A DNA stretch of 64,000 bases from Salpingoeca rosetta. Lineage: Eukaryota; Protista; Choanoflagellata. The notes under the pieces were generated by a model. The model searched no databases and was not told the origin of the DNA. It was given only the letters and a program-made list of their open reading frames with translations. Position numbers and translations under genes: made by a program. Positions 33,511-36,500 of this stretch are shown in pieces (the first letter of the stretch is position 1; the number at the start of each line of letters is the position of its first letter). The DNA is taken from contig JAWQFM010000019.1 of the NCBI GenBank assembly GCA_033442325.1, positions 760,823 through 824,822 of the forward strand, written 5' to 3'.

Positions 33511-36500
33511 TCATGCTCTGATGCACATAAGTGGCGTGTACACATGAACGACGTATCGACACGGCTCTGGTTCGTCCACAGTCACCTACGTGTGTGATGT
33601 GTTGTGTGCGTGCGTGCGTGCGTGTGTGTAAGTGAATGCGTGACAAACAAGGGACAACGATGACGCCAGCGTGCGCAGTGTGTGTCATTGTGGCTAGCAT
33701 TGACCCTGCCTCCTCTTTCTCTTGTCGAGGCCAGCACGACGTGATGGCATCAGCGCAGCCAGACAAGATCATGTCATGGGCAGTCATCGTACCGCTGCAG
33801 CGCGGATTCTGGGGCCGTCTTTGCACATGTACACGACGCGCGCCGTGCGGTGGCGATGGCCGGCAGCACACCAGTCTCCCGCAGCAAGCTCATCCACAGC
33901 AGTCTCGCTGGTGAAGAACAGGGGTGGATGAGGGACAGCATGAGTGGTCGCATGGGCATGCGTGTGCTCGTGGCAGGCAGTGGCACGACTGCGATGTAAT
34001 GCAATGCCATATGGCCAACCTGCACGCATGTCGCCAACTCACCCCGGTGGCACGTCTCCTTTGATGGGGCGCCCAGCAGCGCGATCCACGCCAGACAGTG
34101 TCAATGGCGATTCAACGACTGACGCAATATCCCTGGCGGTGATGGGTTTGGATGGATGAGTGTGAAAGAAAGACAACAAAGATACGCCAGTTACGAGATG
34201 AGTTGACATACACAGCGACACCCACCCACCAACACACCCACCCACACACCCACCCACACACCCACCAACACACCCACACACCAACACATACACACCCACA
34301 TACATCACAAACACCACGCACATTGCGCCATTCATTCCCACCTGACGCCAAGCACGTGCTCCTGCGTGCGTGTGTTACCGTCCTGGTGGAACTGCACAGC
34401 GCTTCGGCCAATGCAAAACTCATACGTCCTAATAACCACAACAAGCAACGAGGGCCATGAGGCGTGCGATCGCGTGATATTTACAGGCACACGCGTACAC
34501 AATGAAGCCACGGCCACAACACCAAACTACAACAAGCAGCCGATGCAAGTAACCGTGGTAGGCGTGTGTCATCGCACCAGAACCCCTGCTTGTGTTGAAC
34601 GCACTCGTCCCACAGTATCGCTCTCCTTGTGAACCAGTCAGCCCGCTCCTGGGACGCGAAATGTGTGCGTGTGTATGTGAGAGAGATTGTGTGTGCGTGT
34701 GTGTGTATGTGTGTGTGTGTGTGTGTGTGAAGATGGATAAGGGAGGGACAGCAGGAGAAGGGCGTGGGTGTATGAGGGGCAGGCAGAGACGGAACACAAA
34801 ACAGCTGTTTGCGTTCCAGGCACAAAACGGGACACAGGTACATGGACGTACACAGACAGACAAATGGACAGACACACAGACACATGCCCACCGTTACGCT
34901 GACGTTTGGTGGTTCTTGTTCTTCAGCCTTTGCGGTGCGCCCTTCCTGGTGACCTTGAACGTGAACACCATGAACCGCACCGTCATCATCACTGCCGCTC
35001 AAACCCAGCGCGGCCATCATCTTGTTCACCTGCGCCATCAGCGCGTCCTTATTACCCTCGGCGCTTGCTCGCTTGATGGCCTGTCTCGCAGCCCGTGGTC
35101 ACGCAAGTGAGGAGGACACGCACAAAAGGGAACCTTGCATGGCGGATTTGGAGCATAGATACAAAAGCAGTGCATATATCCATACATGTACACACGTACG
35201 TCTTGCATTGTTGGGTTTGTGAGTGCGGCATGGAGCTGCTCCAACGTAACTTCATTCGATCCCGTCGACGCCGCTGCTCCATCATCACGTGCTTGTTGTT
35301 GTTGTTGTTGTTGTTGTTGTTGTTGTTGTTGTTGTTGTTGTTGTTGTTGTTGCTGTTGTTGTTGTTGTTGTTTTTGCTGCTGTTGCACCCCCACTTCCCT
35401 TTCCTCGTCCCCTTCCACCATCGCACCCCTCCTCCGTCGTGCCGTCTGCCTCGCCAGCCGCCGCCGCACCGCCGCCCGCCTTCCCTCCGTGCGAATCCCA
35501 CGCGCCAAATCCCGCTCCCCACCATCCTCGCTCGGGGGCAGCGACGCGCCGTACCCTGACGAAGGCAGGTGGTGGCGGTGATAAGTATGGTGGCGGTGAT
35601 GAGAGCCACCTAGTTATGATGGTGTTGTGTACGTGTGGATGCACGATGCACCAAGCGATGATCAGCAGCTGGGCGGCAGTGATGGTGTAACTTCTCAACT
35701 CATCGCACTCTCACCGCCAAATCGCTGACTGAAGGACAGCTGCGGGCACGTGGTTGGGACGCCTGCGCCAGACACAGCATATGCGATAATCGCCAGTGGG
35801 CAGGGTGGTTGTATATCGTGAACTCAGAGCACACAGGTACAAGCACAAACACACACAAGCACGAACACAAACACACAAACGAGTCAAGATGCAGACAGAG
35901 ACATGTCAGACTGACGTGGTGTGTATGGGTTGTAGAGCCAGGATGCGCGCATGCCGGCGAGTGGATTTCGGCGATTCGATGGAAGAATAAGCAACGGGTG
36001 CGCCTCCGTGTTGAAGACGACTGTGTCTGGTGTGTGCGTATGTGTGCGATTGTGCGTATGTGCGTATGTGTGTGTGTGTGTGTGAGTGAGTGAGTGAGTG
36101 AGTGAGTGAGTGAGTGAGTGAGTGAGTGAGCGAGTGAGTGTGTGTGTGTGTGTGTGTGAGTGTGTGTGTACATGGATGTGGCGAGGAGGAGAGACGAGGA
36201 TGAGGGCTGAGATGCGTCTTTGCGCATGGATGCCTGCTCGTGAGTTGCCGAGGTGTGTGGGAGAGAGCAATGAGCGGAACGTAGCCGCTGGGCGGCTGAG
36301 TCTTGGCGCGATAACGTGCTGCGTACCAAGGTAGGGCTGAGGGCCGTCGTTGCTTGCAAGCAAGAAGAGGTATTTGAGCGTTTCAGAGAGGAAGAACGAT
36401 TCCATGCGATCACCAAACGTGTGGTCCTAAAACGTGAGAGGCGCTGAAGATGTAAGTTGAACAGGGAGACGTGCCACAACAACGTGTGCAGCGTACAGCA

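Follow-up and report, generated by a model that had tools for sequence, protein, structure and literature searches.

Does a single gene of the choanoflagellate Salpingoeca rosetta encode both a mannosidase of the EDEM family and a lectin domain of the OS-9 type? The question is raised by a locus on contig JAWQFM010000019.1 (assembly GCA_033442325.1), within the 64,000 nucleotides analysed here (positions 760,823 to 824,822 of the contig; hereafter the window, in whose own numbering all coordinates without a contig prefix are given). Animals, fungi and plants keep the OS-9-type MRH domain on a protein separate from EDEM2. To our knowledge, the passage of clients from EDEM to OS-9 or XTP3-B at Hrd1 during ER-associated degradation (ERAD; ER, endoplasmic reticulum) has been inferred mostly from genetics, and we know of no established direct physical link between the enzyme and the lectin. 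An earlier reading of the window, made from the sequence alone (the sequence-only reading), had proposed that a minus-strand EDEM gene runs in frame into an OS-9-type MRH domain. The answer is almost certainly yes: the evidence given below, which comprises a single open reading frame, spliced RNA junctions and orthologous single reading frames, indicates a real fusion protein with both domains.

A single reading frame joins EDEM2, a linker and an MRH domain

Nineteen minus-strand exons (39632-33511), when spliced and translated, yield one open reading frame (ORF) of 2526 nt, or 841 amino acids (aa), with no internal stop. All exon borders carry the AG acceptor and the GT donor, with matching phases. 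The nine exons previously listed for the 3′ part of the gene all exist in this form, except that the one given as 35080-~34900 ends at 34892, and the peptides quoted from them (FNTEAHP, the poly-Q run and the segment starting with CVQHKQGFW) are all present in the translation. The junctions of exons 1-9 rest on homology with GH47 proteins, the RNA mapping described below having covered 33400-36840 only. The coordinates of the exons and domains are collected in Table 1.

As judged from the translation, the protein resembles an entire EDEM2 to which a linker and an MRH domain have been appended. The frame closes with a TGA codon at 33513-33511 (minus strand), 3 aa past the last Cys of the MRH domain. 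Ahead of the MRH part, the reading frame contains no Met with a hydrophobic signal sequence behind it, as had been noted before. Within the linker (about 180 aa) lies a Q-rich run of 31 residues, encoded at 35385-35293 (minus strand), and a Pfam scan of the linker gave no domain beyond low-complexity noise. Neither its length nor its sequence is conserved among the orthologues. The low complexity of the linker, together with its lack of sequence conservation, suggests that it serves as a flexible tether.

Repeats are abundant at this locus. The (CAA)n tract of exon 13, about 90 nt long, encodes the Q-rich run and interrupts short-read transcript assemblies, and nearly every intron of the gene is full of long microsatellites of the (CA)n, (CT)n, (CACT)n and (TTG)n(CTG)n types.

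RNA evidence for one transcript

Stranded raw RNA-seq reads (runs X19 and X20) and assembled contigs of two further runs (X4 and X5) were mapped on the 3′ part of the gene; the word share of the contigs (0.37-0.39) matched the exon fraction of this stretch. The 10 junctions predicted for exons 9 to 19 were all found in spliced X19/X20 reads and in X4/X5 contigs. The junction ends read CT..AC on the plus strand, i.e. GT..AG on the minus strand, and the orientation of the reads was uniformly as expected of minus-strand RNA. Support per junction ranged from 1 to 17 reads per run in X19 and X20 and was mostly at least two. In X19, the counts were 1, 5 and 4 in the GH47 part, 14, 8 and 17 in the linker, and 13, 2, 13 and 5 in the MRH part, the linker junctions being supported as well as those within either domain. 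The contigs were interrupted only at the CAA repeat of exon 13, where the raw reads still gave approximately threefold coverage.

Alternatively, the locus might consist of two adjacent genes, one for EDEM2 and a small one for an MRH protein, joined only by a minor read-through transcript or by an over-extended gene model. Several features of the RNA data speak for such an arrangement and against a single fused product. No single read or contig covers the GH47 part through to the MRH part, the linkage being provided by the chain of junctions and by the orthologous ORFs. Contig depth climbs towards the 3′ end (183 versus 322 in X4, 17.5 versus 48.8 in X5) and is thus greater over the MRH half than over the GH47 half; this rise is probably due to 3′ bias, but an additional transcript with an internal start may lie behind it. 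Furthermore, intron 13 (35081-35199, 119 nt, minus strand) is partly retained in RNA. An unspliced X5 contig (35051-35228) has a depth of 12.1 as compared with 36.8-48.8 for the spliced form, and this is the sole intron in the mapped stretch with clear raw-read depth, the others having 0. Translation of the retained form reveals a frameshift, owing to which the protein stops at 686 aa, before the MRH domain. Some mRNAs would thus encode an MRH-less protein, and it is possible that they represent a lectin-free EDEM2 isoform or a target of nonsense-mediated decay. Apart from the RNA data, the linker could be cleaved, which would give two proteins from one transcript.

Set against the two-gene explanation is the structure of the region between the domains, where neither a stop codon nor a start codon leading into a signal peptide occurs; a lectin of the ER could not get there if it lacked a signal peptide. 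Transcripts split between the domains had been named beforehand among the observations that would refute the fusion, and the mapping revealed no clustered molecule starts or ends, either there or elsewhere within 33400-36840. The number of reads across the linker junctions, as high as within either domain, is likewise at odds with a minor read-through product. The same combination is found as a single ORF in the transcriptomes of seven other species and as an intronless single ORF in assembly GCA_014466315.1 (see below), and this conservation argues for a true fusion rather than a read-through artefact. Two adjacent genes therefore appear very improbable, and the fusion remains the reading on which the following sections are built.

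Two further features were observed around intron 14. An alternative donor in exon 14, 12 nt upstream of the main one, was used in 4 of the 21 junction reads of X19, the other 17 showing the main joint, and X20 had no such read. Its product, of 837 aa, is shorter by 4 aa without a change of frame; the N-glycosylation sequon NVS at aa 692, just ahead of the MRH domain, is among the residues lost. In addition, reads with loose ends and an A>G difference at 34863 were found on a 33-nt low-complexity piece of the intron (34852-34884), 9 in X19 and 36 in X20. An alternative exon and RNA editing were both considered for this piece and rejected: the consensus of the loose ends maps uniquely to C16:90226-90255, on another contig of the genome, and the reads accordingly belong to another expressed locus, which has a short low-complexity stretch in common with this gene.

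The GH47 part is of the EDEM2 type

Exon-wise matches to PF01532 reached 71, 52.9, 48.9, 41.6 and 28.4 bits in a six-frame search of the genome and 51.2 and 32.3 bits with exon pieces; they span profile positions 2-436 and all exceed the cut-off of 22.9 bits. The catalytic motifs, located by alignment at aa 124, 269 (DSFYEY), 437 and 466 (FNTEAH), are intact, and we take their residues to be the equivalents of E330, D463 and E599 of ER ManI (acid, Asp and base) and of its Ca-binding T688. To judge from the sequence, the EDEM2-type catalytic domain is apparently active.

In blastp searches, the domain was 45-61% identical over approximately 450 aa to GH47 proteins, its nearest named relatives being animal EDEM2 and plant MNS4 (45-48% identity). 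In a GH47 tree, taken without ER ManI, Golgi ManI and EDEM1 sequences, the fusion proteins group in one clade (SH-aLRT 96), with animal EDEM2 as its sister (SH-aLRT 87) and with plant MNS4 and the PA-domain EDEMs outside this grouping. By identity and phylogeny, the GH47 part is an orthologue of EDEM2/MNS4.

The relationship extends past the catalytic domain. A C-P-x-x-x-(F/Y) motif aligns across the choanoflagellate fusions, animal EDEM2 and plant MNS4; in animal EDEM2 it lies approximately 20 aa from the C-terminus. From its position we infer that it is the counterpart of the C-terminal Cys of EDEM2 that is disulfide-bonded to TXNDC11. In the human protein, this residue is C558, and the disulfide with TXNDC11 is required for activity (PMC7039678).

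The S. rosetta genome contains five GH47 loci, on contigs C3, C5, C15, C16 and C19 (six-frame search). Among the relatives retrieved with GH47 exon 6, one protein of 869 aa (P0027) carries a complete GH47 domain together with a complete histone deacetylase domain and probably represents two merged gene models.

The C-terminal domain belongs to the OS-9/XTP3-B type

In exon-wise Pfam searches, the MRH domain is recognized in part: exon 16 by itself reaches 24.8 bits (E 4e-5) against positions 12-38 of PF07915, whose cut-off is 27, and exon 19 matches the end of PF13015. The C-terminus of a 701-aa relative (P0004), in which Pfam finds GH47 with 367 bits and PRKCSH with 38.2 bits, above the cut-off, matches the MRH part of the window at E 9e-18, and orthologues pass the PF07915 cut-off with 38.2, 34.1, 33.0 and 28.5 bits. 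A profile built from seven orthologous C-terminal domains (profile A1) was used as a proxy for the spliced MRH domain of the window. Residues 703-838 of the spliced protein score 115 bits (E 1e-37) on this profile, as compared with at most 4.4 bits for 200 shuffled sequences. Searched against the PDB, profile A1 matched human ERLEC1/XTP3-B at 3e-31 (both MRH domains) and OS-9 (3AIH) at 3e-14, and also Yos9, CI-MPR, GNPTG and the glucosidase II β-subunit (GII-beta; 5e-6 to 0.03); its bit scores do not discriminate OS-9 from XTP3-B. An AlphaFold (AF2) model of the Salpingoeca infusionum domain (pLDDT 79.7) had the OS-9 MRH domain as its best Foldseek match (9og0_E, 1.2e-9; 3aih, TMt 0.78), followed by XTP3-B, GNPTG and Yos9. 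A word-index search with the S. infusionum MRH part returned nothing but its own query, the sequence of the domain having diverged too far for 5-mers to be shared.

The equivalents of OS-9 Q130, R188, E212 and Y218 are all kept in the S. rosetta protein, and Cys is found at six of the six conserved MRH positions (HMMER alignment to 3AIH, hmmalign); both had been recognized in the sequence-only reading, as had the altered double-Trp motif. In the latter, the equivalent of W118 is kept and that of W117 is replaced by Phe, giving F-W. An aromatic residue is thus retained at the first position, which is Y-W or F-W in the other choanoflagellate fusions and W-W in the oomycete fusions described below. 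The orthologue profile, the conserved residues and the fold of the orthologue together make a convincing, if partly indirect, case for an MRH domain of the OS-9/XTP3-B type. Its sugar-binding site is apparently competent, and the domain probably binds mannose glycans.

The fusion is conserved across choanoflagellates

Orthologues were collected by phmmer with GH47 exon 6 against 1.84 billion representatives, by a search with P0004, by cluster look-ups and by Pfam scans; the phmmer search gave no match of 100% identity to the exon. The same GH47-MRH fusion was found in Salpingoeca infusionum (701 aa), Choanoeca flexa (801 aa), Stephanoeca diplocostata (982 aa), Salpingoeca helianthica (890 aa), Barroeca monosierra (695 aa) and Diaphanoeca grandis (813 aa), as well as in Salpingoeca kvevrii (772 aa), where the MRH-like domain is degenerate. 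The protein of B. monosierra is the closest to that of S. rosetta (61% identity in GH47, E 2e-30 in MRH). These seven are complete single ORFs from independent transcriptome assemblies; in assembly GCA_014466315.1, the gene is one uninterrupted ORF of 2988 nt (protein of 983/995 aa). In all of the orthologues, a signal peptide is followed by GH47, by a linker that varies and by an MRH-like domain whose last Cys marks its end. Since the fusion is present in both craspedid and acanthoecid choanoflagellates, it most likely dates to the stem of the group.

In the S. rosetta protein and in five of the other orthologues, the four sugar-binding residues are all present along with the second Trp, a pattern that speaks for selection on glycan binding. 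In contrast, the Q/R/E/Y residues were lost in B. monosierra, which keeps six of six Cys, and in S. kvevrii, which lost two of the six. That these two proteins nevertheless keep the domain hints at an extra, glycan-independent role. One may go further and suppose that the MRH-like domain serves above all for docking to another protein, such as SEL1L/Hrd3 or a PDI partner, with lectin activity secondary or dispensable. This would agree with the replacement of the binding residues in the closest relative of the S. rosetta protein and with the cryo-electron microscopy (cryo-EM) structure of OS9-SEL1L-HRD1, in which the MRH domain and SEL1L jointly form a substrate-binding claw (10.1101/2025.06.13.659592). 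It fits poorly with the six proteins in which the sugar-binding residues are kept, and we regard docking as the main function as improbable; glycan binding remains the preferred reading for the S. rosetta domain.

Other MRH genes and the question of a free OS-9

To inventory the MRH genes of S. rosetta, PF07915, PF13015 and profile A1 were searched against the six-frame translation of the genome (68 contigs, 55.4 Mb in total). Apart from the fusion gene, these searches recovered a gene resembling XTP3-B/ERLEC1, which has a signal peptide of its own and a pair of MRH domains of the OS-9 type, and loci for GII-beta, a GNPTG-like protein and CI-MPR-type repeats (Table 1). A run of N lies inside an intron of the XTP3-B-like gene, near C28:62700. 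A check for a standalone OS-9, which the sequence-only reading had proposed, gave a negative answer: no separate single-MRH OS-9 was detected by this exon-by-exon search, whose limited sensitivity means that a divergent gene could be missed. Three candidates were rejected, at C3:954 kb (GNPTG/GII-beta-like), at C9:172.8 kb (GII-beta with EF-hand exons) and at C23:791.9 kb (a CIMR repeat protein). Given that no separate single-MRH OS-9 was detected, the fused domain is probably the OS-9 of the choanoflagellate lineage, captured by EDEM2 in the stem; the sensitivity of the search is a reservation that applies to this conclusion as well.

Table 1. Location of the fusion gene, its domains and repeats, and of the other MRH genes of S. 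rosetta
Feature	Location (window, or contig where named)	Strand	Remarks
Coding region, exons 1-10	39632-39477, 39246-39128, 38906-38737, 38580-38485, 38348-38229, 37975-37725, 37475-37386, 37138-37074, 36833-36617, 36426-36327	-	
Coding region, exons 11-19	36026-35916, 35762-35715, 35555-35200, 35080-34892, 34648-34578, 34428-34342, 34132-34043, 33907-33793, 33585-33511	-	
Signal peptide, aa 1-24, hydrophobic L/V core	39561..39632	-	Translation; judged by eye, comparable N-termini in all orthologues
GH47 domain, EDEM2-type, aa ~45-475, exons 1-11	35986..39500	-	PF01532 exon matches, motifs, tree
Post-GH47 segment with Cys-Pro motif TTCPQLSF, aa 499-520, exon 12 and start of exon 13	35539..35916	-	Alignment
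Low-complexity linker, aa 521-702, exons 13-14 and start of exon 15	34631..35538	-	Rich in Q, A, R, G, E
MRH domain, C-terminal	33523..34630	-	Exon-wise Pfam, orthologue profile, conserved residues
Alternative donor in exon 14	34892..34903	-	Joint 34647>34903
Intron microsatellites	36080-36150, 36850-36990, 37260-37370, 38000-38125, 38590-38640	-	
XTP3-B/ERLEC1-like gene	C28:60200-64500	+	Motifs GYWSYEFC, GWWRFEYC
Glucosidase II beta	C9:170500-173500	+	EF-hand exons and MRH
GNPTG-like gene	C3:954200-955400	-	With signal peptide
CI-MPR-type repeat loci	C9:1022800-1029800 and C23:791600-793000	+	

An independent fusion in Saprolegniales

The first search for relatives also returned three proteins with an N-terminal PRKCSH domain followed by GH47 and PA domains. 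A region search extended this MRH-GH47-PA architecture to Aphanomyces invadans (XP_008864351.1 / A0A024UIK1), A. euteiches, A. stellatus, Saprolegnia diclina, Achlya hypogyna and Thraustotheca clavata, all Saprolegniales. The order is signal peptide, MRH, GH47 and PA domain, with the signal peptide directly ahead of the MRH domain in most of the six proteins. The MRH domain has the WW motif, and the Q/R/E/Y residues are kept in A. invadans, the one protein of the six checked for them. Like the choanoflagellate proteins, these combine an MRH domain and an EDEM-type GH47 domain in one polypeptide; unlike them, they have the MRH domain first and are built on another EDEM paralogue, with a PA domain. 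In effect, the architecture joins an EDEM3-like enzyme to an N-terminus that resembles OS-9 (P0076, P0283-P0287; P0102, P0125).

In the GH47 tree, the Saprolegniales fusions form a separate clade. The opposite domain order and the use of a different EDEM paralogue in a separate GH47 clade point to an independent origin; on this comparison, the combination of GH47 and MRH arose at least twice.

Discussion

As a whole, the data are best explained by an EDEM2-type mannosidase-MRH fusion that serves as an ER-lumenal factor of glycoprotein ERAD, and we consider this explanation highly probable. In such a scheme, the GH47 domain would trim the high-mannose N-glycans of misfolded proteins, and the MRH domain, held by its tether, would bind a mannose-trimmed glycan, with a terminal alpha-1,6-linked mannose, carried by that client or by a partner such as SEL1L. 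Such binding would keep the enzyme on its client and/or dock the enzyme-client pair at SEL1L/Hrd3-Hrd1, in the way that free OS-9 does elsewhere. It is plausible that one protein both writes and reads the same ERAD signal. The narrower proposal that the fused MRH domain acts as an OS-9-like reader or hand-off module is put forward tentatively, as a finely balanced possibility that falls slightly on the doubtful side.

The C branch is trimmed by MNS4 in plants and by Htm1 in yeast. Mammalian EDEM2 carries out the first, B-branch trimming step, from M9 to M8B (PMC7039678, PMC8570694). Since the mammalian enzyme makes M8B and not the alpha-1,6-mannose signal, the mannosidase of the fusion may not write what its MRH domain reads. 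This is the first of several points that count against the writer-reader scheme. The fused domain also lacks the OS-9 regions outside the MRH domain, termed "4-beta", which the cryo-EM structure of OS9-SEL1L resolves alongside that domain (10.1101/2025.06.13.659592). To these may be added the Phe in place of the first Trp of the WW motif and the loss of Q/R/E/Y in two orthologues. The absence of the non-MRH parts of OS-9, together with the loss of sugar-binding residues in two lineages, leaves room for the glycan-independent docking role discussed above.

Likewise, since mammalian EDEM2 does not perform the C-branch step, there is room for a substrate-presenting role resembling that of GII-beta. 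The MRH domain would then be a carbohydrate-binding module that holds a different branch, or a different glycan, of the client and so raises the efficiency of trimming by the mannosidase, and not a reader for hand-off to Hrd1; the two roles overlap in part. A glycosidase with an MRH domain on a long flexible tether is suggestive of such a module, as is the established ability of the GII-beta MRH domain to enhance glucose trimming by GII-alpha. Furthermore, the separate XTP3-B-like lectin, with its two MRH domains and signal peptide, could be the Hrd1 reader of S. rosetta, and the missing OS-9 parts seen in the OS9-SEL1L structure point in the same direction. However, in sequence, profile and fold, the fused domain is nearer to OS-9/XTP3-B (ERLEC1 3e-31, OS-9 3e-14) than to GII-beta (5e-6 to 0.03), its top Foldseek matches are OS-9 and XTP3-B, and its xWxYExC motif is of the OS-9 type, unlike those of the GII-beta and GNPTG-like genes of the same genome. 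We regard a substrate-presenting function as rather unlikely, and a role close to that of OS-9 is tentatively retained as the working interpretation.

Comparison with known systems underlines how the fusion recombines familiar parts. With OS-9 and Yos9, it shares the PF07915 family and fold, the six Cys, the Q/R/E/Y residues, xWxYExC, ER-lumenal targeting and a single MRH domain; it differs from them in that its MRH domain has no signal peptide of its own, is located at the C-terminus of a mannosidase with Phe as the first residue of the WW motif, and ends almost immediately after the last Cys, without the OS-9 C-terminal region and "4-beta". XTP3-B/ERLEC1 provides the best PDB match of profile A1 (62.5 bits for MRH2, 51.3 bits for MRH1), and its MRH1 has YW, as do several choanoflagellate fusions; unlike the fusion, it has two MRH domains and no enzyme domain. 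EDEM2 and MNS4 share the GH47 domain, the catalytic motifs and the Cys-Pro motif that follows it, but EDEM2 ends some 20 aa past this Cys motif, whereas the fusion has about 320 further residues of linker and MRH. Glucosidase II, too, places an ER N-glycan-trimming glycosidase and an MRH lectin module on one particle, although it does so with two polypeptides, a GH31 enzyme and an MRH domain of the PRKCSH/GII-beta subtype. C-terminal extensions are known from other members of the EDEM family, namely EDEM3 (GH47 with PA) and yeast Mnl1/Htm1, whose C-terminal domain is bound to Pdi1, and these extensions recruit clients or partners (PMC12170172; 10.1101/2025.01.29.635535). The PA or PDI-binding extensions recognize misfolded protein, whereas the extension of the fusion is a putatively glycan-reading MRH domain.

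Full-text literature searches found no paper describing a natural EDEM-MRH fusion, the sole match for a "fusion" being an engineered MRH-IgM probe (PMC12170172). The sequence-only reading had known of no such architecture; this holds for the literature and not for the databases, since such proteins are already present, under generic names, in EukProt (choanoflagellates) and in NCBI and UniProt (Saprolegniales). What we describe is thus an undescribed, conserved and twice-evolved combination of two well-known ERAD modules.

It is tempting to speculate that OS-9 was captured by EDEM2 in the choanoflagellate stem, leaving a lineage without free OS-9, in which one polypeptide trims, reads and shuttles clients to SEL1L-Hrd1. 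The Saprolegniales fusion would then indicate that EDEM and OS-9 form a physical unit in eukaryotic ERAD generally, and the share of lectin-bearing relative to lectin-free enzyme could be governed by the partial retention of intron 13. Taken in its entirety, this scenario is more likely wrong than right.

The two independent natural fusions constitute Rosetta-stone evidence for trimming and reading in close proximity. They also offer a natural, minimal and genetically tractable test case for the coupling of the two activities, since choanoflagellates can be transfected and edited. Finally, the fusion adds detail to the set of ERAD genes known from the nearest living kin of animals and, because animals keep EDEM2 and OS-9 separate, it places a separation or a fusion of the two near the animal stem.

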